Shown here piece after piece: positions 28,966 through 64,000 of a stretch of DNA of 64,000 nt (the first letter of the stretch is position 1; each line of letters starts with the position of its first letter). Below the pieces are notes generated by a model. It was given only the letters and a program-made list of their open reading frames with translations. It had not been told where the DNA came from and did not search any database. The position numbers were made by a program, and so were the translations under genes. This stretch comes from Penicillus capitatus (lineage: Eukaryota; Plantae; Chlorophyta), in the NCBI GenBank assembly GCA_965649825.1, contig OZ287711.1:416781-480780 (forward strand). Reading direction: 5' to 3'.

Positions 28966-30758
28966 TTACACAGAGTTGAGAGTCCGTCCACGCGTGTTAA
29001 CATTGCGAAGACACGGAAAGGCATCAAACAATGATGCGTGTGTTTTGGCATCTATGGTGTGATAAAGAGGGGGATCTACTGTCCGACAAAGTGGGAGATC
29101 TATTGTCCTGAGCTTGGGCAAACCCCCTTGTGGCACTCCAGATATACTGTCGATCAACCGCTCGGGGAATGGAATCTCCAGTACTCTCAAATTCGAGAGA
29201 AGACTCAGCTGTTTGCAGACGAGGCTATGGTCCATTTGTGTCTTGCGACCACCGAGGCGCAGCTTTGTCAGACCAGTCAACGCCACGAATGCGCTGAGAA
29301 ACGCGCGATCCAGACAGGCGTTCCACAATGTCAGTGCCTTTAGCTTCCTGAGTTTCCTGAAGAAATGGAATGGTGTCACGCCAGTCGTGTGGAACAAATG
29401 CATCTCTTTGGCGCTATGGATGCATAAGTACTCGAGACGTGTCAGGTCTACCAGCTCCATGAGCAGGTCTGTTGGAAAACTTTGTTGCGTTTTAAGTCCA
29501 AGATCGACGATTCCTTTTGGAAAGCGTAGGGGATGGTTTCCAGGTGTGGCATCCAGAGACAGCTGTGTGAGCTGAGTGAAAATGCTGAGGCGTTGCGTGA
29601 TCTGGGGTGAGACGACCGTCGGAATACTGTCCAGGAAAACGAGTGATTTCAGTCCGGTCAGAAACTCCATGCACTCTACAAAAGGCAGTATATCTTCACC
29701 TTCGGGTGCGTGCAGCTCCAGCTTGGTCAAGTCCTGCATCTGCCGTATTCCTTGGAAAAAGCTGTTCTCTTGTTGAGTGATGTTGTAAAGCGAAAGCTCT
29801 GACAGACGACGGAACGCTCTCCAAGGGTACTTTCTCTTTGGCGACAGCCGTCTGAATATCTGGCGAATATCCAGTGACTGCAGCGAGTGGGCATACGGTA
29901 AGATCATCTACAGAAGGCGCTCAGGGAAAAGATAGACGCGTGTGAGGATTGACAGACCCTGAGGTGGAAATTAGTCGGCGGTGGGTACTTGTAAGGAAAG
30001 TGACCGACAGTCAGGCGCTCGAGTCCTGTCAATGAAGGCAGAAGAAGCTCACGGCTACTGTTGAATAGCACCTGAATGTCCACCACCAGCTCCTTCAGTC
30101 CTTGCAGCTCGGCGACGGGTTCCAGATCTCTTTGGATGACGCAGTCGACAGAGAGATCGAGAGACAGCAGGTTCTCCAAACGACGCAGGACGTGGACGAC
30201 ATCGTGCAACGTGTCCTCACGACCCACTCGTATGCATAGCATTCGGAGACGTTGCATCGACGGAAGACATCCCACCAGTGGAGTCACGTCCATTGCAGCC
30301 TTGGATAGAGACAGATCTAGATGCGTGAGGTCTCTGAGTCGAGTCAGATGCGGAATCAGATCTGTCTCTACATCATTCACGTCGTCGAGCCAATGGTTCA
30401 TTGTCAGTGAGGAGGTCTTGGGGAACAGGTCAGCGACTTTGCCCAGCTCGTCTGGCCGCACTCTGCGTATCTTCACCGGCACTTTCCCACAAGCTTCGCG
30501 CCATCGTCGACAGACAAGGCGACATTCATGCAGTCCGTCTTCCGCGACGAACGAGAGAACTCTCTGTAGCAGATCTTCCTGTTTGAGAAGGACGCATAAC
30601 GCATGCGCTGCCTCGGTAACTGTGTCTGCATGCGACTCGACAATTTCTTCCCTGACGTCCGGCTCTGCGACCGTGTGCAACTCCGCCTGCTCAGTACTGG
30701 CGGCGCTCTGCGAAGTCTTCTTCTTCGAGTACCGGTGCTTCTTCAAAAGTGACAACAT
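28966..30758 (-). CDS. F-box-LRR protein (intron 29957-29908)
   Basis: LLKQEDLLQRVLSFVAEDGLHECRLVCRRWREACGKVPV, LRRs, 50-bp family intron, FPCLR C-terminus. Confidence 0.9.
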
Positions 30759-31950
30759 AAAGTTCTGTCGACAAATGTAGAGCGAAGGAACGAGCCGATT
30801 CAAGTTCAAAGCGATAGCATTTATCCGTTAACGCTGCAACCCCATCTTCATGTCATTGCTCTCTTGATTCAATCTACTTGAAGGCATGGCGGTGGTCATC
30901 ACGCAGCAATCGCTTTTGCTCTTCTGCGTTGTGATGGATTTCAAAGGTCGGCCAAGTCCTGGGGATCGATAGTGTCGACACTTTCGCCCTCGTAAACGAA
31001 CTGTCGAGTTGAAAGACAATACTTATGACTGTAGGGCCTGGCGCCTCATGTTTGGTGACTCTTCGCTTACGACAGTGTGTGTGCTTTCTCTCGGTGATGA
31101 CTGTCGGCGCTGTCGACGAAAAGAAAAACAAAAAGACGGTCCGGAAACAGCGCCAGAACGGGTCCTGGCCGTTCGCATTGGATCAGCAGTCTTGTTTGAA
31201 CCAGGGATTGGAGTGACATTAAGCAAGGGGAACTTCGTGATTCCGACAATTGCATGCGGCAAGCGACTGCTGTCATTGCATTAGGTGGCATTCCTTCCGT
31301 GCGCCAGCCGTGAGAGCTTGACGTGGACGTAAACCGCTGAGCGTTTTCGAGAAGCTCGTCGCGTCGCGTCAGTCCGGCGAATACTGTGCTTTCATCTCAT
31401 GATAGTGGCGCACTAGGCAGCACACATGCGTCTCTCTTCGTCAAGCCGACCGATTTCGCGACAGGATAATGACACCTAAAACACCACAAGACGTTACTCT
31501 TAAACAATTCTGCGAGCGTCGTGTCAGCAGACATTTACGGCCCAAGACCTGTCACATCAGTTTCTTCGTTCGTGTAGCCTTCGGCGTGTGCTGTGGGTAC
31601 AGAAACACTTCCTAAGTCAAGTAATGGATTCGCTCGAGTAAGACAGTCAGTTGGTTTGGCGTTTCGACGTTTCGAAGCGAACAACACGGACGGCGCTTTT
31701 TCTCAAAAATGATGGGATTCGATCCATGCACAAACGCACCCATTCCACATTAAACAGTTGCCACGTGTCTAGATTCAGGATCATGTACGCCGACTTTCTC
31801 GACAGCGTCGCAGTTTCAGATATAAAGTCGCGTCAGACAGCGCACCGAACGGTTTCCGACTGTCGCTGTTCGGCGTTTTGCGTTTTTCTTTTCTGCTTTT
31901 TTGCGTCGAGTACATACGGTCGCCTCGTTGACACCTTCACGTTCGCGTCA

Positions 31951-33024
31951 ATGAATTTTCAGACGGACCCTCAAGATCGCGCTGTGCTTCTCGTCGTCGG
32001 AAGAACGCGAATTGGGAAGAGCGAATTCATTTCCACAGCTAACCGCATCTTCCACGGCAGCAGACTTCCGGACATCGTATCTGATGGTTTGCTTTCACAT
32101 ACCAAGAAGACGCAGGGATACCCGATGCGTCTTGGTGACAAAGACGTAAGCATGGTGGACACTGTCGGCATCGATGACATCGGCGAGACGGACATTCCCG
32201 ACAAGACGTTGCTCCAGTTTCTTGCGCACAGGAGAAAGGCAGATTTCTATCCGCCGTTGGTCATGATTCAGGCGCTGTCTCGGCTGGAGATAGAGCTCTT
32301 GACAAAGATGGCCTCCTTCTTTACAGACATCGTCGTCGCTCTGCGAATGGATAACAGATCCACTTTCGATATCAATCGAAAGCACATCTGTGAAGCGTGC
32401 CAGATACGACCGATCGTCATCTTGCCGTTACAAACGTTCATGTCTTCTGGCCTCGGCAAGAAGGCAACGCAGTGTGATTACCAAGATGGTGTCTCGACGA
32501 TACTGAGCTTCTACAGAACCTTAACGCCTTCCAAGAAGTTGCCACGTAGTCCTCTATTCGTTGGATCGTTAGAGAAAACGCTGAGCCTGCCAGAAACAAA
32601 AAGCGAAGTCGTTGAAGAAGAAAGCCGCGAAACACGGCGCATAACGAGGGGATCTGTTCTCGTTCGCGTGACCCAAGTCGGCGGCAAGGACGTGTTGTAC
32701 GAAGAAATCGGCAGGATGCCCGTAGCTGTACTCGTGCTAGCATTGCCTTCAATGACTAACGCTGTTGCATTGTTTGGAGCAATACTTGGAAGAAAAGAGA
32801 AGATTAGATACGTCGAAAAACAAAGAGAAGTGGACGAGCTGTTCAAGATTGTAACGAAGATCCGCAGAACGTATGAGAGAGAAGTTCAGGCAGTGTGGAA
32901 AATACTTGCCGGCGATAGCAGGGGTCTCGAGGGATATGAATACGGACCGTGGGAGATTGTCGACGATGAGGTGGTGGCACGTAGCGAAACGAAGGTGTCC
33001 TCAGTTGTGGTCAGAGGAGAGTAG
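31951..33024 (+). CDS. TRAFAC-class GTPase (AIG1/GIMAP/Toc34/septin-like) with C-terminal hydrophobic segment, 357 aa, intronless
   Basis: G1 GRTRIGKS, G2 Thr in SHTKKT, G3 DTVG. Hydrophobic MPVAVLVLALPSMTNAVALFGAILG. Confidence 0.85.
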   Translation: MNFQTDPQDRAVLLVVGRTRIGKSEFISTANRIFHGSRLPDIVSDGLLSHTKKTQGYPMRLGDKDVSMVDTVGIDDIGETDIPDKTLLQFLAHRRKADFYPPLVMIQALSRLEIELLTKMASFFTDIVVALRMDNRSTFDINRKHICEACQIRPIVILPLQTFMSSGLGKKATQCDYQDGVSTILSFYRTLTPSKKLPRSPLFVGSLEKTLSLPETKSEVVEEESRETRRITRGSVLVRVTQVGGKDVLYEEIGRMPVAVLVLALPSMTNAVALFGAILGRKEKIRYVEKQREVDELFKIVTKIRRTYEREVQAVWKILAGDSRGLEGYEYGPWEIVDDEVVARSETKVSSVVVRGE

Positions 33025-34560: not shown

Positions 34561-36344
34561 TCATACGAGACGGTAGATCTGTCCGGCGTTGTCGCCGAGG
34601 TTGCGTTTAAAGGTCGTGGCATTCAAGAAGTGAATACTGCGGAGGCATGGAAACGTTCGAAACAGTACGGATCTCGGCAATGACTTCTCTGTACAAATCA
34701 GTCGCAGTCCAGCGAAACAGAACTTCACCGAATCCCCGTCTGCGATGAAGAGGATGCGTTGAAGACGTGGCACACGACACGCCGCTGGTCGGATCAAGAA
34801 TCCAATCACTGGCCAGTAGCTAGGCATCCCGAGCACTCTCAGATTGCACAGGAGGCTCAGCTGAGCGTAGAAACGATGAACGTCGAAGCGAGTGACCTTC
34901 GGGACGAAACTCAATTCCGTCAGCTCCGGAAGCGTCCCGAGTACGCTGAGAAAATCCGACTCGACGTCGGTCTTCCACAGTTCCAGCGTCTTGAGCTTCT
35001 TGAGCGGCTGCAAAGCACTGGACAGCAGCAGGAGACTGCTGTCTCGATTGCTGACTCGCAGCGTCACCAGGTTGGGCATGCGGGCCAAGGCGCGCGACAG
35101 ATGGAGTTGCGAGTCCCTGAAGATGGTGATCTCAAGGTCGACCATCTCAGGCAGATGACGCAGACGCGTTCCGCACAGGGACATTGCGCAGATCGATCCC
35201 GTCGCGGCGAGACGCGTCAGTTGCGTCATGGCCGCCAGTGAGTCTGCCATGCGTCGTCTGGAGACGATGTCTCTGCACGGATCGATCGAGAGCGATTTGA
35301 GTCCAGTGAGCGCGAGCACGGGATCCACGGAGACTTGACCATCCGGATGCATTCCGCCGGCGATCGTCACTTCTGTCAGGCGACTCAGCTCCACGAGGGC
35401 GGCGGGGAAGTCCGCGTCCCTCAGGGCGAAGCAACTCGTGACGAGCTTCTCCAATCTCGAAAAAGACGATAGCAACAGCCATCCCTGGAATGAACGTCTG
35501 GCAGTGCACGCCTCGATGTCCAGTGACCGCAGCGACGCGGCATAGGGAAGGAACGACTAGAACAGACACAGCGCGTTTCAGAATGCTCGTGCGGCGCCTA
35601 TCGCACCTGCAAGTGCACTGCTGTCCAGTCCTGTGGTCCCAGATGAGGAGCGTCGCTGAATCTGAGTCCCGTGAGTCGGGTCAGCGACTGGAAGACGAGC
35701 CGCCCGTCACTCCTGACCAGACTCCTAGCGTTGCCGCTCAAATGCAGCAGTCTCTGGAGCTCTGTGATCGGTTCGGGAAAGGCATGGCTGTTGCACGGCG
35801 CGTGGACATCCAGGTACGTGAGGTGCACCAGGCGTCTCAAGGTGTCCATCCAGACGGCGTGGGTGGTCGCGTCATCCGAGTGGAAAGAGAGCGATCGGAG
35901 GCGATCCATCGACAGCAGAATCGGACGCAGTCCCTCGGCGACCTGATGTCCAGGTCGAAACGGCACCTGCATTGTGTGGAGCTTCCTGATTTCTGACAGC
36001 CAGGGCAGGGCATCGACACCCAGTCCTTTCTTTCGGCTCCTGTCGACGAGGCACAGAGATGCCGCCTCCGGAAACTTCTCTGTCACCTGTCTCACCATTT
36101 CGGTAACGCTGATAGAGGAGACGTCTGCCCGAATTCTGACGGGCAGCCTCCGGCAAGCTTCACGCCAATGTCGACAGACGAGGCGACACTCGTGAAGGCC
36201 GTCGTCCACGACGTACGCAAGCACTTTGAGCAGCAAATACTCGTGTTCGAGAAGTGCACCCAGGCTGCCAACCACCGTCGAGGGCTTGGATACGGAGCAA
36301 GTATCCACAACGTCTTGCCGTCTCGCCAGCCGTGACAAGGACAT
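34561..36344 (-). CDS. F-box-LRR protein (intron 35606-35557)
   Basis: LLEHEYLLLKVLAYVVDDGLHECRLVCRHWREACRRLPV, LRRs, 50-bp family intron, FPCLR motif. Confidence 0.9.
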
Positions 36345-39546: not shown

Positions 39547-41422
39547 TTACCATCGAAGGCAAGGAAAAGCTTTCGTCAATGCCGAGTAAGTATTGTCATC
39601 AACGGAGCCTCGTATACCGCGACCTAATTTTCTGAGCTTGGGCAAACTCCCATGCGGCAGTCCAACTTCACTGTCGACCAGCAACTTGGATGGAAACGGA
39701 ATAATAAGCTCCCTCAGATCTGAGAGCAGGCACAACTGCTGGAGGAAGAGTTTTTGGTCGACTCCCTCTGGCTCGACATCATCAAAGCACAGCTTCGTCA
39801 AGCCGGTCAAAGCCACAAAAGCGTCGAGAAACGGGCGATCCAGACGGACATTCCGCAATGATAGTGTCTTCAACTGCCCAAGTTCGTTGAAGAAATGGAT
39901 TGGTGTCATACCATCCGAATGAAATAAATACATCTCTTCGTAACTATCCAGTTGCAGTGACGTGAGTTTGGTCAAGCCGACCAGCTCCTCGGACAGGCCT
40001 TCCGGAAAAGAGTGTCCTGAGGAAAGATTGAGATCGACGATTCCCTTCGGGAGGCGCAGAGGTCGGTCTCTGCGCACGTAAGGCAAACACAGCCGCGTGA
40101 GCTGCGTCAATACTGAGAGGCGTTCCGTGATCTCCGATGACATATCCGGATTGGCATATTCATAGCCAAGCACAAGGGATCTGAGACGTGTGAGTGAGTG
40201 CATGCTTTCTGAGAAACCTTGCGCGTCTGTTTTGGATGCGAAAACAAAATCCAGACTCGTCAGCTGGCCCATCTGCTGCAGTGCCATGAAGAAGCTCGCA
40301 TCTCGATCGTAGCAACTGTAAATTTTAAGGCTCGACAGATGCAAGAACGACCTCCACGGGGACGGCCCTGGCAGAAGCCACTCTTCCAACGTCGCACGAA
40401 TACTAAGCGATTGCAGATTCTCAGCATAAGTCAGGATACTCTATCACAACACAGGTTAATTGACAGACAATTGAATGCAGCAGTTGGTAAACCTGCAGAT
40501 CTCGAACGTACGGCTTTGTGTCTTTGAACTCCCAGTCGTCATAGACACTGAGGCTGGTTAGTCCAGTCAACATGGGGAAGACAAGCTCGTTCCAATCGTT
40601 GGCCAGTAACTCAATAGCTGTATGCAGCTCACGGAGTCCCGTGACACAGCTGCTGGGAACCAAATCGTCTACGGAAGCACATTCATGACTGAGACGTAAC
40701 GATGTCAACTTCGTCAGATAACGCAGGTCATGAATGAAGTATTGCAATGTGTCTTCGTGACAGATGCATAACTCAAGAAATTCCAGATTCTGCATGGACG
40801 ACAAGCATGCGATCAGGTTTCGCATATCAATGGAATAGCCGGAGAAAAGTAGAGAAAGATCGTATAAATATTCGAATCGCTTCAACTGTGGGACCACGTG
40901 TGTTTCTATGACGTTCTCATTGTTAACCCAGCCTGACATGTACAGTGTTTGGGCCTTTGGGAACTTCTCTGCTGCCTCCTGCATGTTATGCAAAGATATT
41001 TTCTCTAACCGAACAGGCAGTTTCCCACAGGCGTCGCGCCACCGGCGACAGACGAGACGGCATTCGTGAAGGCCATCCTCAAGGACGTGCGAAAGCACTT
41101 TAAGCAAGAAGTGTTCCTGCTCGAGAAAGGCACTGAGCGAATCGCCCGCGCAAGGACCACTGGTCTCCGTATCCGTCGACGCATCGGAACTGCGACGCAG
41201 CACACAACTGTGAGCATTGGGCAACTGACTACCTTGGGGGCATACCTCATCTTGCAACGAACGGCGTTTCGCTGAAGAATGCGGAAACACGACGGTCTCT
41301 GGTCGGGCGATTTTCGTTTTAACGTTCTCGTCGACGTTGTCTAGCTTGAGGCGACGTACGTCAAATGTTCGCATTCGATGTGACATGACTTCTCGTGTTG
41401 TCCACGCGACATCAGATTTCAC
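39547..41422 (-). CDS. F-box-LRR protein (intron 40492-40441; start uncertain)
   Basis: FLEQEHFLLKVLSHVLEDGLHECRLVCRRWRDACGKLPV, 52-bp family intron. Most similar by eye to the 28966 copy (RLPKGIVDL, TPxHFF, PxGxLPKLR). Confidence 0.9.
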
Positions 41423-42743: not shown

Positions 42744-43829
42744 ATGTCGTCTTTGCCGGACTCCAAGGCACCTCCCATGTTTCTCGTCGCCGGGAGAACG
42801 CGCATCGGAAAAGGCGAGTTCATTTCCACGACGAACCGCGTCCTTGGAGGGAGTCCTCTTTCGGGTATCGTTTCTGATAGCATGGTTTCGCATACGAAAG
42901 AGACACAGGGATATTCCATGCGTCTTGGTAACCGCAAGGTGGTGATGGTGGACACCGTCGGCTTCGACGACAGCAGCGGAACGAACATACCAGAAGAAAC
43001 GCTGTTCCGTTTCCTCGAGATAAGCAGAAAGGCCGATCTCTATCCGCCGCTGGTCATATTGCAGACGCTGTCTGCGCTGGAGAAAGACCTATTGCAGAAA
43101 ATGAGTGCCGTTTTCCCGACGATCGTGGTCGCTTTCCGTTCCGAATTCAAGTCCAGGCTCGACGAGGCCCGACTCGATATTGAGAGAGCGTGCGAGAAGA
43201 AACCGCTCGAGATCTTTCATTTACAAAGCTTTGTCTCCGAGGACCTTGACGGCGGGAGATCTCGTTAACTATACGATGACGCCGTCTCAGACATCGTCCG
43301 TTTCTACGAAACCTTGACGCCTTCCAGAGAGGAGCTGGATTTTTTGAGCCCCTTGTTTGCTGGAGAGTACCAGTGGACGCCATGTCCTAGAGAAATCAAA
43401 ATTGAAATGATCGAGGTCAGCCGCATCGAGACAAGGACCGAAACAAGGACAGTTCAAGTTCCGGAGACTGAAGTCAACGATGACGAAGCTAAGTTGCACG
43501 GAGCGATCGGCGGCACGGTGGCCGGCGCTGGTGCCCTCACGGCGTTGGCAGTTCCTCCAGTGGGACTCGCCGTTGTAACGTATGGCGCCTTGCATGCCGT
43601 CTTTGGGGCGATATTTGGAAGAAAAGAAGAGATCAGATATGTCGACGTGCAAAGAGAATTCGACGTAAACTTTACGGTTAGAGAAAAGATCCGCAGAACA
43701 TATGAGAGAGAAGTTCAGGAAGCGTGGAAAGTACTTGCCGGCGAGATCAAGGTTTTCAAGGGATATGAATACGGACCGTGGGAGATTGTTGACGATGAGG
43801 TGGTGGAACGCTCTGTTTCCAGAGACTAA
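42744..43829 (+). pseudogene. Second AIG1/septin-like GTPase with one in-frame TAA (43266-43268)
   Basis: GRTRIGKG, SHTKET, DTVG. The frame continues past the TAA as LYDDAVSDIVRFYETLTPS, matching paralog DYQDGVSTILSFYRTLTPS, through to the shared C-terminus. Confidence 0.85.
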
Positions 43830-48200: not shown

Positions 48201-50229
48201 AAATGCCGAATCAAAGAAAGACTGCTGCGAGCGCGATGATGATGTCGCTTTGCTCATCAAGGCTGCCGTTTCACTGATCAGAGACACAGATGTGAAGCAT
48301 CGAGAGTTTCGCGAGATCCTGGGACACATGCTTCAGCAATGTCCCTTACTGTTCTCCGCTGTGCCCGAGATCCTCGATCAGCTGACAGAAACGACAACGG
48401 TCAAGAAAGCACTGAGATACGATGTATTCGGAGACGTCGTCATCATTACCAAGAGATCTGACAAACACTTGACGATTTTGATGAAACTGGCGCAGCACAA
48501 CATTCAGAGTTCGGATCTCGAGACGCGTGATGTCGGGATACAGATGATGCGAAAGCTGCTGGACTTTGTGCCCGATCTCTTCCAGAGATTCACGCCGTTG
48601 TTTACCGAGATGTTCAAGGACGATCGGCCCGTCGTTCAGGATACGGCACTGCAAGCCGTGATCAGTCTCCTGACAGACAAGCGCGAACTGTTTCCTGTCG
48701 TGCTGCCGATGATCCAGGAAGCGATCGGCAGTCTAAAGAGCTCTGCACGACGGGCGGCGCTGGAAGTGATCGGCAGTCTGTCATCGGTGACAGATGACGA
48801 GTTCGAGTCTATCTTGCAGATGATCATCGGCGGCGGCAGCGATGAAGACGAAGAAGTCTGTCGAACGGCAGTGCAGGTTATGAGGCACTTCGTATCCGAG
48901 AAGACATCCCAAGCGCCCGATTTCATTCCAGTGCTCGAGCGTCTTCTTTCTGGAGAAAATGAAAAGGTTCGACAGGAAACGGTCAAGACGATGGAGTACA
49001 TGGCCAAGAAAGCTCCAGACGTGCAGCAGGGGCTTCTGGATATCATAAACGAGACTTACGAGAACGGAACGGCCGGTGTTCGGCGAGATACGGCAGCAAT
49101 GGCTGGACGTCTGGCTGCTGATTTACCGGAGATTCAGGAGTTCTTGTTGCCGATGATTGAGAAAGTCTGTTACGACAGGTCCGCCGCCGTCCGTTTAGCA
49201 GGAATGGGGACAATTAAGCGTCTGATGGTCAGATCCTCGGAGGAAAGGAACGAAATGTGGCACCATTGGGCGACGGTGGGATTCCTGGATAAAAACAGAT
49301 CCGTTCGCCGAGCGGCCGCTGAAGCCATCAGTTGTCTTGCCTCAGTTCCTCACCTCTGGAAACACAACCTGATGCTGTTGCGAAGAGCCCGCTTTTTTGA
49401 CGACGTCCACGTGCGTCTGTGGACGGTCGATGCACTGGGTCGACTCTCTTCTGCTGCACCTCACATTTCAAAAGACGTTCTTGCGCTGTTAGAAAAGACG
49501 TGCTCGGACTGGAGCGTCCACGTGCGGCAGTGGTCGATGGAAGCTGTCGGACATCTGGCCTCCGCTGCGCCAGAGCTCGCGTCTGATCTGCTGTCGTTGG
49601 TAAACATGGGGTGTATGGATGAAGACGAGCACGTGCGTTTGTGGGCCTTGAAGGCAGTCAGCAGATTGGCAACAGCTGCACCAGAGTTTGCAGACGATCT
49701 TCTGCCGCTACTCAGGAATGTCTATCAAAGCGACGACACTCATATGCTGAACAGGGCAGCCGAGGCGCTGAGAGACTTCACGACGGCGGCTCCGCATCTA
49801 TCTGCCCAAATCCCGACAAGAGTTGAGAGCGAAGAGGACAGTGACGCACCGTCATCGACTGGGCTGGCACCCGTTTCGCAAGGAGCGATTATCGATGACT
49901 TCGAAGACGTACTGAAAAAGGCCATCGAAACGAAGAACACGGAAACTCGCGAGCGAGCCGCATTTGGACTTTTGCATGATGCCGTCACCGTGGAGAATAC
50001 ACCACAGGAAGGAATCGTCAGAGTTCTCCTTCATACGACTGCCATCAGAGAAGTGGGCGAGTATCCGTCCAAGGAGATAGAGAAATTCAGGTCTGAGATC
50101 AGAGAAACGATCGAGAGTTCTTGCGGCGGTTTGATGGAAGTGTTAGACAAGGTGGCGATAAAGCCAGATAGGACGGCGTCGACAGACAAAGTCAAGTGCC
50201 AACCAACACACACGCTGCATTCTCGATGA
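45249..50229 (+). CDS. NACHT (STAND) NTPase with N-terminal helical domain and C-terminal HEAT repeats, NLR-like, about 1641 aa (exons 45249-46757, 46813-50229)
   Basis: Walker A GMPGSGKT, Walker B LLVIDGWDE, winged-helix FPHLTFQEYFA, HEAT repeats (VRxxAxxxL). 55-bp GTAAGG..GAAG intron conserved in the paralog. Confidence 0.93.
49399..49842 (+). repeat. Four tandem 111-bp (37-aa) HEAT repeats inside the NACHT gene
   Basis: His codons at 49408, 49519, 49630 and 49741 are exactly 111 bp apart. Units: HVRLWTVDALGRLSSAAP / HVRQWSMEAVGHLASAAP / HVRLWALKAVSRLATAAP / HMLNRAAEALRDFTTAAP. Confidence 0.92.
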
Positions 50230-51231
50230 AGCTGCAACCCAACCATTAAACAACAGAAGTGCCCTCGCAATAAAACCGTTTTTATTTTCGTTCGTGTCAA
50301 GTCTGCCTGGTCTCAGGATTCGTTCGTTATGATTGTTGGGCTGTCAGAAGAGGCAAAAGAGGGCATCTCGCTTTGTTGCTTCTTTGTCCCACACAAAGCC
50401 AGTCTAGCATCTTAACGTTGTTGTCGAGATGCAAGGAGTAGAATCTTCTTGCGACGCACCATCAGTTTTTTTCTCTATTGATTCGTTTGAACGCGAGGAC
50501 TGCAAACATGGGACGGAATTTGTGCGGGCGAAATGGTACAGCGAATGTCGAAACGATCGTTCATTTAAGAAGGGATGTTGGCGGTTTCGTCAAGTTCTCA
50601 CTCCTCGCTCGGCGAAAATGGACTTAGAGCACAGCGGATATGTTTCATGCAGCATCGCAGAGGGTAATTCGATGCTCAGAAACGCCTATTCTTGTGAACG
50701 CGTCTCGACGACGGGCACGTCGACACTTTATCTACGTCTTATCTTCGAGGCGAGGTGCCCGCGAAGCAGGCAAGGCGGAAGCGGACGGGCACCTTCCTCT
50801 CCTTGTAAGGTCACAGAAACGGCAGTCGGCAAACTGAACAAAGGAACAGTGATGGAAGCACTTCTGAGCAGGGAAGGAGTCACTGACCGACGAACTCAGC
50901 GCCTTCCAGCTTCAGCTTAACGACGCGCGTCCGGAATGATGGATCGACGATGAAGGGTGCGATGACACTCGTCAGAAGGCAGAAGGCATTTTCTGATTTA
51001 GCATTACCAGTAAGACGGTCTCAAAAGGCACTGTTTTCGTTTCCATCGCCAGACTAGAGATATCAAAGTTTAGCAAGCCAGTGTGATCCTATTGACACGA
51101 GTGATATCAAGATTTTTAAAACAAAATAAAACAGAATAACTCTTCGTTACAGATGATGATGCTTGATCGAATAACCCTCTTTTGTATGGTTTTCCAGCAT
51201 GACGTCACGATGGCGTCACGCTTCATGTAAC

Positions 51232-51380
51232 TGTTAGGACGTGAGATGGACATCGGATTCTAGGAGTGTCTAGTCACCTCAACGATGTACTTGATATGAC
51301 TGGTTGTGTATAGAAGGAGCCAGATGGGCCTCCTCGTTGTAACAAAGGTTGGCGTGTTCTGGTAATACGATCCTCTAACA
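51232..51380. mobile_element. 149-bp solo-LTR-like insert, 4-bp TSD TAAC
   Basis: TGTTAG...CTAACA termini, TAAC on both sides. Removing it restores colinearity with 57385-57539. Confidence 0.8.
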
Positions 51381-51662
51381 TAACGATGTGGCCTTCCTCT
51401 TCAGTTTTTCTTCCTTCCTTGACTTCGTGACAGTGACGCTATAGTGACAGAAAAAAGGTTTTGAAGTTAAAGGAGTTGTTCACAAGAATCTAGATTTTTT
51501 TAACATGTACTGTCCTTTTCATTTGTTTACGTCGTAGTTCTCACGGTGTAAGTTAACAGCCGATGGCGCGGGAAAACAAGGCGAAGAGTCGGGAGAACTA
51601 ATCTCTCAAAAAGACTGTTTGACTTCCTCCTTTTATAATGACACATGATTCATTTGATTGTG

Positions 51663-54258: not shown

Positions 54259-54598
54259 TGTCGGGAATCCAATGTAATAGTGGTTCAAAAGGTAGCTGAG
54301 TCTTTGCGCGTCGAGACGACAGAAACACAATCAGATTTGAGGCAATACGAACGGGAGTTATTACAAGGCGAATTGTCGACCTTATATACCCAGGGTGGTT
54401 ATGGACTTCCTACCCTTACGTCCTAACAGCTGCGAACTCCTAGTGCATGCAGCATAACCACACCCCTTACGTTATGGGGAAGTTAGGTCGGGAGCCGACA
54501 TCCGTCGCGACCGATGGTCAGCGCGTCTGGATGGTTATGTGACGGCTCCACCGCTTCCGGTGGCTACACAGATGACAGTTAGAGGTTCATTTCCTACA
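54259..54598 (-). mobile_element. 340-bp solo LTR inserted in the RT, 5-bp TSD CCAAC
   Basis: TG...CA termini, CCAAC on both sides. Removal rejoins AYNQIVLG|QQIRQFFGF in frame. TATA-like TATATAA on the minus strand. Confidence 0.9.
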
Positions 54599-57362: not shown

Positions 57363-57539
57363 CAGCCAGCGGACCAACAAAAACTCAGGCAACTTTTTTG
57401 TTGCAGCTGATTCTTTGTTCGGATAACCCCCTTTTTATATGGCTTCCTAGCATGACGTTATGATTGGCGTCATGCTTCCCGTGATGACGCGACCTTCCTC
57501 TTCAGTTCCCCTTCTTCCCTTGACTTCGTGATAGTGACA
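57363..57539 (-). mobile_element. Possible 5' LTR remnant and primer-binding site of the Gypsy element (counterpart about 51130-51449)
   Basis: Both segments begin TGTCAC on the minus strand and align by eye. TGGTCCGCTGGCTG at 57376-57363 would pair with a tRNA ending C1:G72/A73 (Tyr-like). No outer TSD or polypurine tract was found. Confidence 0.4.
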
Positions 57540-57639
57540 ATGGTATGAGCATAAAAGATGTCGCGGATTCGCTCGGTGCCGCTTTGATCGGATGGTCACA
57601 TAATTGACTCGCAATGAAATCAATTCGGTACTTTCACAT

Positions 57640-57725
57640 AGAGACATAAAGATCTTCAGGGGTTATAAATACGGCTATGGTAGATTGTCGATAAAACGAC
57701 TCTGTCTCGTTCCGTTTGCAGAGAC
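57640..57725 (+). pseudogene. Remnant of the 3' end of a third GTPase copy
   Basis: AAGATCTTCAGGGGTTATAAATACGGCTATGGTAGATTGTCGA aligns with 43748-43795 (KVFKGYEYGPWEIVD), and the downstream spacer is homologous. Confidence 0.65.
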
Positions 57726-58826
57726 CGATCTAATCTTGTCTATTATTGATTAGGCGCCGCTGCTGATGATCGATGTCGTTGTTTGTTTTGCTTCTTCTGA
57801 TGACGAGTCGAAGAAAGGCTGTACCATTTCTGTGCTGCGCTCGGGTGAACGTTTCTTTGTTCGGAATGCGTGTTTTCATCGACGACAAGAAATCGATGGC
57901 CGTCGTGCAGGTCTTCTCTAAGTGTTTGTACGAAGCAAGAGACTTGTTATTAAGGAGAGGAAGACTGTCCAGCTCTTAACGGATCTCAGCTCGGCATTTT
58001 CTTGCACTGATCCGTTTGTTACTTGTCTCTTGGTTGCCGACAAGTCACATCTTTGCTGTTGTAAGTCAAGGTTTTTTAGGGACATAGGAAAGGGTTAGAG
58101 CGAGCGTCTGTTTCCGCAAGAGACGCCCGTTAGAGACAAGCGATTACGTACACACTGGCTTTAGAGGGCCGTACGATCACACTTGGCGTCAATCAAGAAT
58201 CCGAGATGACATTCGCGTCGTCGCATGTTACGAAGTGAACGTGCTTCGAGTGGCAAAATCGAGAGAAAAAAGGGCGAACTGCAAATCCGAGCAACCTGAC
58301 AGAGATGCAGAGATTGATAAACATCCGAGGTATTCTGAACAATGCTTGCTGTTATCACAGACGCTTTGACGTCTGCTTCCACCTGATCTAAAACGTGTTT
58401 GCCTCACACATCCTTCGTGTGCAACAGGGCGGCACAGCTAATCATTTAGCTGTCTTCTTTTGTCTTCGTAGTCATCAACGATCTGCTGTGAATCTACAAG
58501 AGATCGATCAACGTGAGCCAATTGATGAGTAAACAAACAGTAAGTGAAGGAGGTGGCAGCGGCGAGCCCTTGATAACCATATGATCGCTCTTTATAAGAA
58601 CGCCGAGGATGCGTAACACTTGGAGTTTCACTCAACGACCATCGGCACCAAAAATTCTGATGACTTGAGATTTAAAGACGAACTCGAAGGAGTTTCCAGT
58701 CTGACTGACCACTCGCGTTTTGTTGCAAGACTGCGGCGTTTATGACCAAACGGAGGGTCCTTCGAGGAGTCTCGGCAGACTGACCAGTTGGAGGATTGAC
58801 TTCCGGGTCACACTCTCCCGAGCGTC

Positions 58827-60503
58827 ATTTTTTCCTCGTACGACACTTTCGTTCCGCCGCTTCGAAAACCCTTGCAGAACGACGGTGCCCGCACGCGTGA
58901 CAACGAACTATGCAGCCTTCTGGCTCCCAGTCTGGAGGTCCTGACACCGCCCCCGACCCAGTGCGCACGGCGGTTGCTCAGGACGCAAACACGGTCCGAT
59001 ACCGGCGCGACCTGCGCCGGTCGCCGGAGGTTCTGGAGAACATGAGCAAGGCTGAGCTCATACTCGTGAACACCGCAGTCCGGGCGTGCCCCACAAAAGA
59101 CGCTGCTTCCATGGACTCCACACAGCTCATCCTGAGAATCCGAGCTTGTTTGGAAGCCCACGAGAGGCGAGACGCCGTGCAGCTCCGACTAGTCCGCCGC
59201 CACGAAAGCACCCGAGACTCGCTCCTATTTGCCCCAGAAGGTCCCTTCTATGATCCGCACGCTAAGTCTTCCTGCCTCTCACAGATCTGCCGGTACAAAG
59301 AAACAGTTACCCCGTCAGATCTCTTGGAAGCACTCGCCCAAGACCTCGACAATTCGCAAGCTCATCTGGCATGCGCCATAGGAACCGTTCTACCCGAAAA
59401 CCGAGAAACGCTTCTGGGAACCGCCACTCGTCTTGAGGAGATAGGAAACTGTCTCAAATTTCACAAGTCCATGGTCTCGTTCACACCAGCACCCCCCACT
59501 TCCAATGGTCCACGTTACATCACCTTCTGCGGCCGGCACAGCTCGAGAAGACACCCGCTCGTACCGCGACGCCGCCCGTCAGTCCTTGCCCTCAGAGCAG
59601 CCCCTGACCACGACCCTCGCCCAGCGTCAACGAACCACCCAGGCACGAGAGATCCGGATGCAAACCAATGCAATCAAGGCCCAGATCCGCTGTGACGAAC
59701 GCAGTTTCCAGCTCTGCCCAGTAACCCTAAAAGGAGAGCGCCCGTCCTTTCGCCAGCTTGGCATCAGTCTGGAACGAACGCTGAAGATCCAGAACCTGAA
59801 GGAATATGTCGAAGACATCCGGGCAGATCACGGCGGAAGATACTACGTGCAGATTCGGGCAGAACTGATTCAGAAATTCGAACAGGTTCTCGACCGTTGC
59901 CTGGAATGCGCCGGTGTCGGATGGGACCTGGAGCTGGACGACATCGGGACCTTCACAGTCAACAATTCGTACGTCTCGCCCACCAAAGACAAGATTCCGG
60001 TGGTCATTGGCAACGTTGACACAGATATTGACCCCGAAGCAGCTTTCGAAGCTATCGAACACAGAATGCATCCCGATGGAACCTCACAGCTACCGACCTA
60101 CAAGAATCGCACCTCGCGGCCCCGCACCGGTTGAATCGCAGGAAACGTGATCCCTCAGGACAGCCTCTTCCCGACTGGCTGCCAAGCAAGACCTGAAAGT
60201 CTTCATATCGAAGACACTCTACGAGAAGCTCCATGAAGAGAGCAAGACTCCGTACGCGACACTGGATTACATGGTCCTCCCGATACGCCCATTCGTTCGT
60301 ATCACTAGCGCGCCTCGTGGAAACACTGGATAGCACGCTGAGCAACCGGTTTATCTATCACCTCCACCGTACACGAGATCATGATCTTCCCTTCCCTGCC
60401 TAGTCACCTCCGTCCTGAGCCTTTGATCGTTGGTCTTGTCACTGAAACAGCTGCGCCTTTGATGTTTAACTTAAAAAGGGCTGTAAGCACGACCAACTTT
60501 ATT
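58827..60503 (+). mobile_element. 1.68-kb non-LTR-type insertion encoding only a frameshifted ORF1/gag-like protein, 15-bp TSD
   Basis: ACTCTCCCGAGCGTC at 58812-58826 and 60504-60518. The insert is absent from the paralogous site at about 44890. ORFs 58910-59695 and 59505-60134 include an SYRDAA motif; no RT or endonuclease motifs seen. Confidence 0.8.
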
Positions 60504-60863
60504 ACTCTCCCGAGCGTCTCTCTCTACGCATACAGCGTACCTCTACAATCCGCATGCGCTTCTCAGACAATGCTTGCCGATGTGTCGAAGCTGATGCGCT
60601 AGACGGCGGTCCTGCACACAAGACAACGCAGGTTACCGGCGAGGCCATCTATCGCCGGAAGATGGCGAATCTCTGCGCATTGGTGTCGCATACGCAGCAG
60701 TACTTGACATCCGACGCTTGACGTTTTAATCGAAGCGATGAGTCGAATCTTCATCTGCTGCAGAAACTACGCGTAACTCCACCGAACGCGTTACGCACCG
60801 AGGTCGGTTCGCTGTTCGTTTTCCTTACGTCAAAAGATCTCTGGTGCTTCGCAGACTCCAGTC

Positions 60864-63800
60864 ATGTCCACCAGCGAGATACAGGCTGAACCCAGTATCG
60901 GCAGCGCGGATGGCCATGAAGACGGTAGCGGCGCCGAACTGCCGCCGGAAAGACAAGGCCACAACACTTCGGACGAGAAGAAGCTGAGGGCTCTCATTCG
61001 ACAGAAGAGCGTCGACTGCACGACATCTCTCGTGCGAGTATATAATGGTTCGCCGGCGGGCGAAACGGAAAAACTCCTTCAGCAATGTCTTCGTATCTAC
61101 GGCGAGACGAAAGAGAAGCACGTTAACGCCGACAACGTCATGGAATTCGTAGAGCTTTGCAAGATGAAGCCAAGGACGGAAGACGACAACGAGCTGCTCC
61201 GCGAGGTGGTCTTCTTTCTTAGTGACTTAATTCCCAGCGATAAATTCGCTGACGAAAGAGTCGCAAAGGCGCTGCACAGGTCGTTGCTCTGGACAGCTCC
61301 AGCAATTTTCCAGCAACAGCTTGCAAAACTCGTAGCACTGGCGATTAAGCTTACGACCAGCTTACATCCGACGCCAAGGCTGACGATTACAAACTTTCTT
61401 CAACACGAGGCCATATTCTTGGCGCTTCATGAAGTTTTCGTCCTCATACAAAGGACAACGGGCGAGAAGGTGGCGATGGAAGAGAAGAAGAGTTTCCAGT
61501 CAGGCCTCAGGACGAAGCGCTCGTCGATGGGAGGCTCATGCAGGTATTATCCCGTCCAGTACTACTTCAGACTCATCGAACAGAGCATTCAGCGACTGGA
61601 GCTCGATGAAGAGACTTCTCCGATTTTGAAAGCCGTCCATTGCTTGTATATCACCAGCTGCGTGTTCCTGCATATCTCCTACGTAATGAAACAAATAGTA
61701 AAACTCAATATCAATCCGAGCCAACTGAGAGCACTGCCTGGCATTCTGCAAGAGTTGGTGGCCGGTATAGACGTTGCAGAACGACAGTGGTACGATCTAC
61801 TTCAGGAACTCTGTGTCGCGGGCAGGAAGGCAGTGGACGATCACCGGATGCTTGAGATTTTCGAGGAGAGCTACAAGACCGTGGAAGAATCTGTCTGGAA
61901 GATGCGACTCAATGAAGACAGCAGGGCGTTACTGTTTGGGCTCATGCAGGAGCTCCGTCATCTCGCTTTAGCTCGAGGATCTGCCGAAGTTCGAGCTTCA
62001 GGATCATCTAAGCTCTTTTCCTTGGCGGTTGCCGTTTCGCAAGGCTCGTGGATCAACGACAAACAGATCGTGGAAGCGCTGCTCTGTTGTCTTCATGCCG
62101 TCCATTCGAGAGGCAACGATGCGGCGTCGGCGATGAGATCCTCACAGCAACTGATCGACGCCGTCAAGTCGGGGGCAGTGAAGAAAGCCGTAGAACAATG
62201 GATGGGCGACAAGCCGCTTGACGAGAAGCTCCGCGAGCCGGTCTATGCGTCTTCGGAACCCGCTGGCGATCTCTTCGCTGCGATCGGTCGAGAGTTCAAT
62301 CACATACCATTGCAAGAAGCACGAGCAAACGTCGAACTGTTGAAGAGTCGGTACCGAAGGGACGCCTTCGCCACAGTAAGGTTTTTCACTTTTATAGTAT
62401 TTAGTGTTTACCGAGAGCTTGTGTATTGAAGGTCCCTTCTCTGTTCGACGATCAGTTACGCCTGCACGTGAAGGAAATGGAGCATCACATTGTTTTCTAC
62501 CAGATCCTGGAGGATGAGAAGGAACCATCGAAACGAACAGGCCCGCGTAAGAGCAAGGACGACCAGACCACTGGACGAAGAGTTGCAAACTCGATTGCGC
62601 TGGAGGATCTGTTCAAGAAGAGAGTCGTGAAGGAGGATCGTCCTGCGCAGGATATCCGAACGATTTTGTTTCACGGGAAGCCTGGATCAGGGAAGACATG
62701 CATCGGCAAGTATATCGGGTATATGTGGGCAGGGGGTCAGTTGTTCCAGGAATTCGACGCTGTATACGTCCTGCCTGCAAGAGAGCTCAACAATAAAGAA
62801 GATATCGAAGACGCGTCCAACGAGTTTCTGGCGTTTGTTCTCAGACAGTGTTTCCCCACGGTACGTGCGTCCGATAAAGGGCTGCGCGCTCAAGTGGACG
62901 AGCATCTGGATTACCAGACGACGCTACTTGTCATCGACGGCTGGGATGAAGTGGACGAGAAGGCCGAAGCCATTCTGAACGAAGCAAAGCGCAAGCAATG
63001 CAAAGTCCTCTGGCTGACGCGTCCATACAACCTTCGATCAATGCGCGAACTCACCGATCTCGAAGTGGAGTGCCTGGGATTCAGTGACGAGCAGGTCGAC
63101 AGGTATGTGAAGAAAGAGATGGTTACCAGACACGAGAAAACGGACGCAGAGGCTCAAGGTCTTATGGATGCTCTGAGAGGAACGGCTTCGCTGTGGGAAG
63201 TGGCGCACATCCCAGTGATGACCTACATCCTGTGCTTCCTCTGGGTAGAGGGGGTGAGCCTCAGTCAGCGGAGTCCGGCTGCAATGTATTTCGATATGGT
63301 GAACCACATCTGGGATCTCTTCATAGAGAAGGTGGAGTACCGCAAGGAGAATCCCACTCGTGAAGAGGTCTTTGCGGCTCTTGAGGTCATTGCGTTCGAG
63401 GCGCTGCGCAAAGACCACATCCTTATTGGATTGAGCTTCGTCAACGAACGAGTGTCTTCTCTAAAAGTCAGACAGGTGTTAAGACAGAGTGGATTCCTAC
63501 TGTTCAAAAAGGAAGACGTCGACTACCAATTTCCACATCTGACTTTCCAGGAGTACTTTGCCGAGAGGTGGGTGGCGAAAAGCTTAAAGAATCTCGATTC
63601 ACCAAACGGCGAGACAGCCGTCAACTGTTTGCGAGAAGAGAAGTACCTGAACCGATATCGGAGAACGCTGCAGTTCCTGGCACAGCACATGGCAGAGGCA
63701 GAACAAGGTGACCTCCCCGAGCTGCTGTCATTCTTTGACGACGGACCGATTGAGATCATCGGTCTGCGGCATCTTCTCTTAAAACTGTACATCATCGAAG

Positions 63801-64000
63801 CTTGGCTGATGGGGACAGAAAACGAATCGAAGATCAAAAACTGCTGTAAGTACGAAGCTGTCGCTTCGCTCATCAAGGCTGCCGTTTCGCTGATCAGAGA
63901 CACAGATGTGAACCATGGAGTATTTAGCGAGATTCTGGGACACATGCTTCAGCAATGTCCCTTACTGTTCTCCGCTGTTCCCGAGATCCTCGATCAGCTG
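60864..64000 (+). CDS. Second NACHT-HEAT NLR-like gene (exon 1 60864-62375, exon 2 62432 to beyond window)
   Basis: Colinear with the first copy: GKPGSGKT, LLVIDGWDE, FPHLTFQEYFA, same intron position (56 bp). No stop seen in exon 2 where I read it. Confidence 0.92.

Follow-up and report, generated by a model that had tools for sequence, protein, structure and literature searches.

Duplicated F-box-LRR, GTPase and NACHT-HEAT genes at a locus of the green alga Penicillus capitatus

The locus analysed here raises the question of whether genes for F-box-LRR proteins, GTPases and NACHT-HEAT proteins that stand side by side more than once form a functional module or have been copied together as neighbours. 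The window, i.e. the whole stretch of 64,000 nucleotides from Penicillus capitatus that was analysed, had been interpreted in a preliminary description as carrying a linked cassette of sensor, membrane effector and ubiquitin regulator. Much is known of NLR-type receptors from land plants, animals and fungi, and lately from bacteria; in marine green algae they are, to our knowledge, almost undescribed, and a search of a paper library returned no paper joining NACHT proteins with Bryopsidales genera or siphonous green algae. NACHT-HEAT genes whose N-terminal domain is novel number in the dozens across the window and its relatives, and one NLR subfamily is adjoined by a tiny GTPase family known from a handful of algal datasets.

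Gene families of the locus

The features of the window are the following:

9922..11594, plus strand: fourth complete F-box-LRR paralog (tblastn), intron 10615-10673, without adjoining GTPase
14544..15497, plus strand: SnRK2-type Ser/Thr kinase (Pfam Pkinase, E 8e-61)
22445..24166, plus strand: fifth F-box-LRR paralog (tblastn), intron 23177-23224, without adjoining GTPase
28966..30809, minus strand: F-box-LRR gene A (Pfam F-box and LRR_14), two exons, 50-nt GT-AG intron 29908-29957
31951..33024, plus strand: GTPase 1 (Pfam MMR_HSR1, family alignment, AF2 model, hydropathy)
34561..36344, minus strand: F-box-LRR gene B (Pfam F-box and LRR_14), intron 35557-35606, without paired GTPase
39547..41422, minus strand: F-box-LRR gene C (Pfam F-box-like and LRR_14), intron 40441-40492
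42744..43829, plus strand: GTPase 2, in-frame TAA at 43266-43268, remaining frame intact
45249..50229, plus strand: NLR1, 1641 aa, exon 1 45249-46757, intron 46758-46812, exon 2 46813-50229
50274..51069, minus strand: remnants of a dynein heavy-chain gene (3' part), by nucleotide similarity to the dynein gene of loci L001 and L003
51143..57538, minus strand: degraded Ty3/gypsy-type LTR retroelement (Pfam rve, RT_RNaseH, gag-asp_proteas; direct repeats)
57643..57728, plus strand: tail of a GTPase gene, last 86 nt (start of the self-alignment)
57729..60863, plus strand: GTPase-NLR spacer, copy 2, with a 1.7-kb insertion at 58827-60503
60864..64000, plus strand: NLR2, running off the window, exon 1 60864-62375, intron 62376-62431, exon 2 from 62432

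Two-exon models apply to both the F-box-LRR and the NLR genes, their short GT-AG introns (48-59 nt) being conserved. The abutting or overlapping ORFs of these genes were also considered as frameshifts or pseudogenes; alignment of the paralogs across the junctions, however, revealed the conserved introns. Upstream of the three annotated minus-strand genes, tblastn within the window detected three further plus-strand F-box-LRR genes or fragments at 7.2, 9.9 and 22.4 kb, and three of the six F-box-LRR genes of the window have neither a GTPase nor an NLR gene adjoining.

Concerning the F-box-LRR proteins, the Pfam F-box scores of genes A and B (22.9 and 25.5 bits) exceed the cut-off of 20.5 bits, whereas gene C stays under it (17.9 bits) and is covered by F-box-like with 21.4 bits. 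The LRR_14 matches of genes A, B and C (E 6e-9, 3e-9 and 2e-8, respectively) reach 34-37 bits and are thus under the 40-bit cut-off in all three, so that the earlier assignment as F-box-LRR genes holds marginally. The motif LLxVLSxVxxDGLxECRLVCRRWR is present across all the F-box-LRR copies. The proteins resemble FBXL-type SCF substrate receptors in having an N-terminal F-box and, next to it, a putative LRR solenoid, although their F-box scores lie at or just under the Pfam thresholds. In plants, the abundance of NLRs is known to be regulated through ubiquitin, and CPR1 is an F-box protein; its C-terminus is of a non-LRR type, and the parallel with the F-box-LRR genes of the window is therefore functional only.

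GTPase 1 is a single intact ORF (31651-33024; 357 aa counted from the conserved Met) with the P-loop GRTRIGKS, the G3 motif DTVG, a hydrophobic segment at about aa 256-280 and a conserved C-terminal motif; MMR_HSR1 scores 21.9 bits. GTPase 2 consists of two ORFs in the same frame (42618-43268 and 43314-43829) with a TAA between them. The gap was also considered as an intron; since one TAA splits two same-frame ORFs and the codon at this position is CAA or CGT in relatives, it represents a nonsense codon, and GTPase 2 is likely either a recent pseudogene or a protein truncated to its G domain.

Among the ten aligned members of the GTPase family, nine have GKG rather than GK[ST] in the P-loop—GTPase 1, as given above, having GKS—while the G3 motif is invariant and a G4-like VVAxR(x)[DE] is partly conserved, its R-x-D/E presumably occupying the G4 position of GIMAP proteins. 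The hydrophobic segment is followed by a conserved domain of ~65 aa that matches nothing known. As for the GIMAP/AIG1 identity proposed earlier, the fold comparison may speak for it, whereas Pfam speaks against it. The top Foldseek matches are GIMAP7 (E 1.8e-5) and GIMAP2, within an E range of 2e-5 to 3e-4, the TM-scores being just 0.4-0.5 per target and the AF2 model of low confidence (pLDDT 63). The best AIG1 score in the GTPases of the window, on the other hand, is 13 bits against a Pfam cut-off of 27; in the family, AIG1 is found in four of ten members at E>=0.021, and MMR_HSR1 in eight of ten at about threshold. The family profile gave no significant match in the PDB, and a profile search placed fungal AIG1/septin/MMR_HSR1 multi-GTPase proteins as distant relatives. 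The family is tiny: a word search gave 9 clusters, and of 1.84 billion representatives 44 matched at E<=1e-3; its nearest named relative is from Caulerpa lentillifera (E 4e-44), followed more weakly by Seminavis robusta (E 1e-29). GIMAP/IAN/AIG1 GTPases occur as small tandem families with links to defence loci, and the present proteins share with them what resembles a TRAFAC-type G domain, including motifs at the G1 and G3 positions, and the hydrophobic segment C-terminal to it, but differ by the sub-threshold AIG1 match, the mostly GKG P-loop and the novel C-terminal domain. The family is very small, taxonomically restricted and lineage-specific, and, judging by these comparisons, weakly and distantly GIMAP-like.

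The NACHT and HEAT domains named in the preliminary description were both confirmed by Pfam. In the ORF 46777-50229, NACHT (PF05729) covers residues 88-242 with 49.8 bits (cut-off 26.7; E 4.6e-13), and HEAT reaches 67.9 bits and HEAT_2 54.6 bits, residues ~550-1050 matching many helical-repeat families; the translation of NLR1 contains the Walker A motif GMPGSGKT and the Walker B-like LLVIDGWDE. Exon 1 of each NLR encodes ~503 helical residues and is joined to the NACHT exon over a GT-AG intron of 55-56 nt, the position of which is kept in paralogs of 30% identity. NLR1 is free of internal stops, and NLR2 is stop-free within the window. The N-terminal ~500 aa have no Pfam match and, with the family profile, no PDB match; their AF2 model (pLDDT 65; input not derived from the locus) gave generic alpha-solenoid matches alone (TM<=0.3), and none of the known NLR effector or adaptor domain types (TIR, death-fold, HeLo, PNP) was recognised in this region. 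Scans with PADLOC and NCBIfam yielded nothing informative.

The NACHT-HEAT family comprises >50 clusters; its nearest named relative is also from C. lentillifera, and alignments with NACHT-HEAT proteins of Bacteroidota extend over as much as 88% of the query, at 26-32% identity. It shares with the NACHT NLR/STAND proteins of fungi, animals and bacteria the succession of an N-terminal domain, a NACHT NTPase and superstructure-forming C-terminal repeats, as well as the organisation as a large tandem-clustered family with pseudogenes and probable gene conversion, and it differs by the unclassified N-terminal domain, by HEAT in place of LRR, WD40, ANK or TPR repeats, and by its green-algal host. 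By analogy, the most likely role of the NLRs would be to sense non-self or damage through ATP-driven oligomerisation. Helical-repeat C-termini occur in some fungal NACHT-type NLRs (Dyrka et al. 2014, PMC4986451). NACHT NTPases have been reported from green algae and early plants, the Chlamydomonas examples carrying WD40 repeats (PMC4773052); the presence of NACHT STAND proteins in Chlorophyta is thus common to both cases, whereas here they are NACHT-HEAT proteins with a novel N-terminal domain in dozens of copies.

Duplications within the window

The head-to-head pair of a minus-strand F-box gene and a plus-strand GTPase gene does occur twice, as A/GTPase 1 and C/GTPase 2, according to nucleotide matches. 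F-box genes A and C (67.5% nucleotide identity over 520 nt, E 2e-40) are, as previously supposed by eye, mutually closest among the six F-box-LRR genes of the window, with 45% amino acid identity to each other and <=40% to the others; GTPases 1 and 2 share 49% (tblastn) or 51% (MAFFT alignment) of their residues and 72-82% of nucleotides in two patches (E 1e-48 and 1e-53). At 45-51% amino acid identity, the two copies of the pair are old and diverged. The chain leading from F-box C and GTPase 2 to NLR1 at 39.5-50.2 kb is likewise real, GTPase 2 carrying its in-frame TAA.

The proposed second copy of a whole GTPase-spacer-NLR unit was borne out in part: spacer and NLR are duplicated, but of the GTPase gene only the last 86 nt are present. 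The self-alignment pairs 43743-44905 with 57643-58826 and begins 86 nt before the stop codon of GTPase 2. A second GTPase upstream of NLR2, whole or split by the retroelement, was also sought by tblastn (E<=1) in 50230-51500 and 56800-57700, where just an 11-aa C-terminal tail was found. NLR1 and NLR2, both with intact frames, are identical in 83% of nucleotides (dS 0.38, dN/dS 0.35); across the NLR comparisons, dN/dS ranges from 0.35 to 0.41 and does not exceed 1 in any 100-codon window. Instead of a co-duplication of NLR and GTPase, as had been claimed, there was one tandem segmental duplication with its breakpoints in the GTPase (left) and in the dynein gene (right); since the left one lies inside the GTPase, the latter was left out of the duplication of the NLR.

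Between the two copies, the dynein remnants (50274-51069) share 74-82% of their nucleotides with the dynein gene that lies downstream of the NLR at loci L001 and L003, and the retroelement has its protease, RNase H and integrase split over several ORFs, with LTR remnants at ~51143-51437 and 57397-57538 (direct-repeat patches of 77-87% identity). The ORFs of the insertion in the second spacer (58827-60503) have no Pfam match.

Gene order at related loci

The arrangement F-box (minus)/GTPase (plus) followed by NLR (plus), or at least a GTPase beside an NLR, was found at five related loci on metagenome contigs—L001, L002, L003, L005 and L006. L001 and L003 have the full chain of F-box (minus), GTPase (plus) and NLR (plus), with a minus-strand dynein gene after the NLR, dynein domains being detected by Pfam at both loci; L006 has two F-box/GTPase pairs and then an NLR, L002 the order SnRK2, GTPase, NLR, and L005 the order GTPase, NLR, GTPase. 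The first of the F-box genes in L003 matches F-box gene B with 71-74% identity. An NLR lies within ~12 kb for nine of ten GTPase copies of the close subfamily, the GTPase being almost always upstream on the same strand, and the starts of divergently arranged F-box and GTPase genes are 0.6-1.5 kb apart.

By contrast with these loci, there is no GTPase or F-box gene within 10 kb of the NLRs of L004 and L008, which are distant NACHT-HEAT paralogs, nor of L012, a close one. The divergent GTPases of L007 and L011 are without NLR or F-box partners, while L010, syntenic with L007, has a GTPase without an NLR and, head-to-head to it, a decayed F-box stub; the GTPase locus of S. robusta (L009) is flanked by ordinary LRR genes, with neither an F-box nor a NACHT domain among the neighbours. 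The families are thus linked at five loci and unlinked for the distant NLRs and GTPases and for the close NLR of L012, and, as all loci with the linkage are closely paralogous or correspond to each other, the linkage was not seen to recur in independent lineages. For six F-box/GTPase pairs, the identity matrices of the two families correlate with a Mantel r of 0.49 (3.5% of permutations as high), the pairs L003 and L006a being incongruent; the co-duplication of F-box and GTPase is only partial.

Other genes recur as well. The SnRK2 kinase of the window (best PDB matches SAPK10 and SRK2E, E 2e-86) has paralogs of 68-84% identity in the flanks of L002, L005 and L006, and P450 paralogs occur in the window and in L012. 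Together with the C. lentillifera relatives of the NLR and the GTPase, the SnRK2 kinase supports a green-algal origin of the window. A diatom origin, considered because of the S. robusta match, became less likely on these grounds, the C. lentillifera GTPase match being the stronger one; the dynein heavy-chain ORF at hand was too divergent for use as a taxonomic marker. It should be pointed out here that a 401-aa minus-strand ORF in L002, at first a candidate for a further neighbouring gene, runs antisense to an SnRK2 kinase and merely reflects its other strand.

Origin and possible role of the repeated pattern

The locus is probably a rapidly duplicating, lineage-specific birth-and-death cluster of an alga of presumably ulvophyte type, birth-and-death having been proposed in the preliminary description, and its repeated patterns arose by non-specific segmental block duplication. 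An old duplication of a divergently arranged F-box/GTPase pair would have been followed by a younger tandem duplication (dS ~0.38) of a stretch that begins at the GTPase 3' end, spans the NLR and ends in the dynein gene, and an LTR retroelement would later have inserted at the duplication junction. The order F-box/GTPase to NLR has probably been inherited, in view of the dynein-flanked counterpart in two related metagenome assemblies and of the paralogous blocks, and the divergent F-box/GTPase pair may share a promoter. Since SnRK2 and P450 paralogs recur in the blocks, repeated linkage is the expected product of block duplication, and the unlinked state of the distant NLR and GTPase relatives and of one close NLR fits inheritance in this way. 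The F-box/GTPase pair is the most persistent association, that of GTPase and NLR being looser and dispensable in cis. As a counterpoint, the closeness of GTPase and NLR and the persistence of the head-to-head pair at 45-51% amino acid identity could reflect selection for co-regulation.

It is possible, albeit doubtful, that the three families form an immune cassette selected and multiplied as a unit, in which the NACHT-HEAT protein senses, a membrane-anchored GIMAP-like GTPase executes and the F-box-LRR protein tunes the turnover of the receptor or the GTPase via SCF. The same gene order and orientation at six loci agrees with this, as do the divergent F-box/GTPase spacing—suited to a shared promoter and kept even at the decayed L010—the hydrophobic segment of the GTPase together with its GIMAP7 and GIMAP2 fold matches, and the nearest named relatives of both NLR and GTPase in one species dataset, that of C. 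lentillifera; the NLR being without a recognisable effector domain, an effector in trans is plausible. However, the GTPase 2 of the chain is prematurely stopped while NLR1 is intact, which argues against an obligate one-to-one partnership; NLR2 was copied without a GTPase, the NLRs of L012 (close), L004 and L008 (distant) are partnerless, the F-box and GTPase trees are just partly congruent, and three of the six F-box-LRR genes of the window have no GTPase adjoining. SnRK2, P450 and the dynein fragment, moreover, travel with the blocks, so that the recurrence extends beyond the three families. An unlikely variant of such coupling is an undescribed NLR system of a siphonous-type green alga, where a membrane-inserting GIMAP-like GTPase with the atypical GKG P-loop and an F-box-LRR adaptor, transcribed divergently, work with the effector-less NACHT-HEAT receptor encoded immediately downstream; this would be a trans-acting module of sensor, executor and turnover factor, possibly wired to SnRK2 stress kinases. 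A non-immune role of the NACHT-HEAT proteins and GTPases, in a giant coenocytic or stress-exposed alga—control of wound plugs or cell death, allorecognition on cytoplasm fusion, or stress signalling with SnRK2—is quite improbable. It would accord with the recurrence of SnRK2 stress kinases in the blocks, with the control of allorecognition by fungal NACHT NLRs described in two papers (PMC13449251, PMC12222747), and with the dN/dS of 0.35-0.41, a clear arms-race signature being absent as no 100-codon window exceeds 1; the >50 NACHT-HEAT clusters, tandem birth-and-death, pseudogenisation and possible gene conversion, on the contrary, are usual hallmarks of non-self recognition. The immune and the non-immune reading are inseparable by sequence alone.

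An assembly artefact, such as collapsed or uncollapsed haplotypes joined in tandem, is an extremely improbable source of the duplicated NLR unit. Although the related contigs, and probably the window as well, belong to metagenome assemblies from long reads with uneven coverage (14x-173x), the copies differ in 17-23% of nucleotides at a dS of 0.38, the second has its own 1.7-kb insertion, and they are separated by a degraded retroelement and dynein remnants; they are therefore far too diverged and structured for haplotigs.

If the neighbours are functionally coupled, the locus would represent a new build of an NLR pathway, with effector and turnover factor in trans beside the sensor, and an entry point to the immunity or wound responses of giant coenocytic algae; if they are uncoupled, it would be a clean example of block duplication making apparent "modules". 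The locus resembles plant and animal NLR clusters in its tandem and segmental duplication, transposon insertion, pseudogenisation, divergent orientation of neighbours and mosaic dS suggesting gene conversion. It differs from the head-to-head NLR pairs of plants and animals, since here the F-box-LRR and GTPase genes are paired, with the NLR downstream on the GTPase strand. Concerning the mosaic dS, a patch of low dS between NLR1 and the NLR of L001 suggests gene conversion, which, if so, would place the window and L001 in the same genome.

Gene models and protein families

The domain calls of the preliminary description (F-box-LRR, GTPase and NACHT-HEAT) were all confirmed by Pfam, and the genes concerned occupy the following positions in the window:

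28966-30809 (-): F-box A, F-box and LRR_14 on an ORF pair
31651-33024 (+): GTPase 1 ORF, weak MMR_HSR1/AIG1-type P-loop
34561-36344 (-): F-box B, F-box and LRR_14 on an ORF pair
39547-41422 (-): F-box C, F-box and LRR_14 on an ORF pair
42618-43268 (+): GTPase 2 ORF, weak MMR_HSR1/AIG1-type P-loop
45249-46757 (+): exon 1 of NLR1, the first NACHT-HEAT gene; previously unrecognised domain of ~503 aa
46777-50229 (+): NACHT exon ORF of NLR1, NACHT (49.8 bits) and HEAT
46813-50229 (+): exon 2 of NLR1, carrying NACHT and HEAT

In junction alignments across paralogs, each gene proved to have a single short GT-AG intron whose position is conserved; its length is 55-56 nt in the NLR genes and 48-59 nt in the F-box-LRR genes, the NLR intron being kept even in NLR paralogs of only 30% identity. 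Damage as the cause of the split ORFs is ruled out by these conserved introns; each NLR is therefore ~1640 aa long. The reading frames of NLR1 are intact, and its NACHT domain, Walker motifs and HEAT repeats satisfy the family definition. The N-terminal domain, for which no Pfam match, no PDB match and no specific fold match was obtained, is all-helical and resembles a generic alpha-solenoid. A recognisable effector domain is absent; a sensor role through nucleotide-driven oligomerisation is probable for the NLRs, judging from their family.

The window contains six F-box-LRR genes or fragments, of which the additional three, at 7.2, 9.9 and 22.4 kb, are plus-strand genes. In Pfam, the F-box of genes A and B scores at the threshold, that of gene C below it. 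The partial gene at 7207-7942 (+) comprises the F-box and the following region, its LRR half not being detectable; over 86 aa it shares 57% identity with F-box C, and decay of a paralog is its probable origin, as for the F-box stub at 7763-8299 of the related locus L010.

The GTPase family is tiny: the indexed search gave 9 clusters, and 44 of 1.84 billion representatives matched at E<=1e-3. It scores below the threshold for AIG1; the best fold matches of the AF2 model—one of low confidence (pLDDT 63)—are GIMAP7 and GIMAP2, and the remotest profile matches are fungal AIG1/septin/MMR_HSR1 proteins. Distantly GIMAP-like is thus a fair description, membership in AIG1 not being established. Nine of the ten aligned GTPases have the P-loop GRTRIGKG, GKS being found only in GTPase 1 (P-loops of the window at 32014-32040 and 42795-42821). 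The GKG type has Gly at the expected position of the Mg-coordinating Ser/Thr, and such proteins may be pseudo-GTPases or may use an unusual catalytic arrangement. In all full-length members, a hydrophobic segment precedes a conserved C-terminal domain of ~65 aa that matched no known type. GTPase 2 has an in-frame TAA at 43266-43268, its relatives carrying CAA or CGT at the same codon. At locus L007 (assembly ERZ25074695), flanked by CUX1, UBX and MTPAP, the GTPase paralog (9998-11325) is split across two frames, which a frameshift or a sequencing error would explain; in the syntenic L010 (ERZ26696514), it is a 343-aa ORF with a 149-aa ORF just downstream.

Duplication history of the window

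The head-to-head pair of F-box (-) and GTPase (+) is present twice, as had been claimed, and within the window F-box A and C do prove to be mutually the closest paralogs. Both copies of the pair are old, with amino acid identities of 49-51% between GTPase 1 and 2, and 45% between F-box A and C. The proposed second unit of GTPase, spacer and NLR holds only in part: the spacer and the NLR were copied, the GTPase being represented just by its last 86 nt. Self-alignment matched 43743-44905 to 57643-58826 (77%) and 44891-48384 to 60504-64000 (83%); since it starts at 43743, the left end of the copy lies 86 nt upstream of the stop codon of the GTPase. A relaxed tblastn search on both sides of the intervening retroelement found no GTPase remnant beyond this tail.

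Directly after NLR1, there is a dynein remnant (50274-51069); it matches, at 74-82% in nucleotides, two pieces of the dynein heavy-chain gene that follows the NLR in L001 and L003. Next comes a degraded Ty3/gypsy-type element whose protease, RNase H and integrase ORFs are broken and whose LTR remnants are 77-87% identical; beyond it lie the GTPase tail, the spacer, which has a 1.7-kb insertion of its own, and NLR2. The dynein remnant and the GTPase tail at the ends thus identify the NLR duplication as a single tandem segmental event whose breakpoints, one within the GTPase and the other within the dynein gene, are arbitrary; the transposon entered the junction later. The insertion (58827-60503), confined to the spacer of the second NLR copy, contains overlapping ORFs (58910-59695 and 59505-60134), for which there was no Pfam match and no counterpart in any fetched locus.

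NLR1 and NLR2 differ by a dS of 0.38 with dN/dS of 0.35, and both have been maintained for some time. Overall, dN/dS was 0.35-0.41 and no 100-codon window exceeded 1, so a clear arms-race signal was not seen. Residues ~901-1200 of NLR1 (~48.0-48.9 kb) exhibit a dS of 0.06-0.10 against the L001 paralog, versus 0.3-0.6 for the rest of the gene, which hints that NLR copies have undergone gene conversion or have recombined; if so, L001 and the window would be parts of one genome or gene pool.

Linkage at related loci

The NLR search yielded about 57 NACHT-HEAT clusters, mostly from long ENA metagenome contigs, and twelve loci were fetched. Had the families been unlinked elsewhere, this would have counted against the proposed module; the chain of the window, i.e. 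F-box C head-to-head with GTPase 2 and followed by NLR1, was, however, found again at five of these loci:

L001, L003: F-box (-) head-to-head with GTPase (+), then NLR (+), then dynein (-)
L002: GTPase, then NLR
L005: GTPase, NLR, GTPase
L006: two head-to-head F-box/GTPase pairs, then NLR

An F-box B-like gene is present upstream in L003, exactly matching the arrangement of the window. The linkage, however, weakens with divergence: no GTPase or F-box gene occurs within 10 kb of the NLRs of 30% (L004, L008) and 74% identity (L012), the GTPases of L007, L010 and L011 are without an NLR, and the homologue from Seminavis robusta resides among ordinary LRR genes with neither F-box nor NACHT nearby. 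The F-box and GTPase gene trees are congruent only in part (six pairs; Mantel r 0.49, a value that 3.5% of permutations attained), with clear incongruence for L003 and L006a. One observation speaks for the F-box/GTPase pair: the decayed F-box stub of L010 remains head-to-head with its GTPase, so that the pair appears to be ancestral to this GTPase subfamily.

In the related loci, the GTPase and the NLR are separated by 3-4 kb, and these spacers share ORF-like conserved stretches (L001 5929-6635; L002 6273-7362; L003 6426-7502; L005 2295-3414; L006 18901-19546) that are missing from the 1.4-kb spacer of the window; they could represent a small gene or upstream NLR exons.

Other genes recur as well:

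Window 14544-15497 (+), L002 1866-2813 (+), L005 20162-21085 (-), L006 3105-4052 (-): SnRK2-type Ser/Thr kinase, 68-84% identical
Window 3316-4524 (+) and 12621-13910 (-): cytochrome P450 genes in inverted orientation, 65% identical in nucleotides
L012 15303-16445 (+): P450 paralog, 65% identical, just downstream of the close NLR paralog

The kinase paralogs of L002, L005 and L006 are within the flanks that were fetched, and that of L002 immediately precedes the GTPase. The best PDB matches of the window kinase are rice SAPK10 and Arabidopsis SRK2E (E 2e-86), compared with 2e-49 for the next SNF1-type kinase. SnRK2 is a subfamily of the green lineage, and the kinase is both a fourth recurrent neighbour and a green-lineage marker. 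Proteins from Caulerpa lentillifera are the nearest named relatives of the NLR (g1979, NACHT) and of the GTPase (g5707, GTPase-like; E 4e-44 for the latter). The short spliceosomal introns mark the organism as a eukaryote; the kinase and the Caulerpa relatives make a green alga the likely source, probably an ulvophyte close to the Bryopsidales.

Cassette or birth-and-death cluster

The best-supported reading is that the region is a lineage-specific birth-and-death cluster, the gene order of which would have been inherited via block duplication and conserved microsynteny. A less likely reading is that the NLR sensor, the GTPase and the F-box-LRR protein form one cassette, in line with the candidate immune system of the preliminary description; in its favour, the orientation is persistent, the NLR is without an effector domain, and the families have a narrow distribution in common. 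On the other hand, GTPase 2 is probably pseudogenised, NLR2 and the L012 locus have no GTPase, and unrelated genes travel along with the blocks; it should be noted that this movement of SnRK2, P450 and the dynein fragment limits the meaning of the recurring chain. NACHT proteins of green algae (PMC4773052) and fungal NLRs with varied repeats (PMC4986451) are already known; within the library that was searched, no paper linked NACHT with siphonous green algae, nor did any describe the three-family linkage.

With regard to the remaining features of the window, a GC-rich block (10001-22000; 57-68% GC versus ~50% elsewhere), with ORFs open in six frames, contains an F-box-LRR gene, a P450, the SnRK2 kinase and a TPR-repeat gene (18298-20103, -). 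A PLAC8-family ORF is present at 5041-5601 (+; Pfam E 5e-24), and an intergenic 54-nt segment occurs in two direct copies at 25524-25643, 66 nt start to start and 94% identical.
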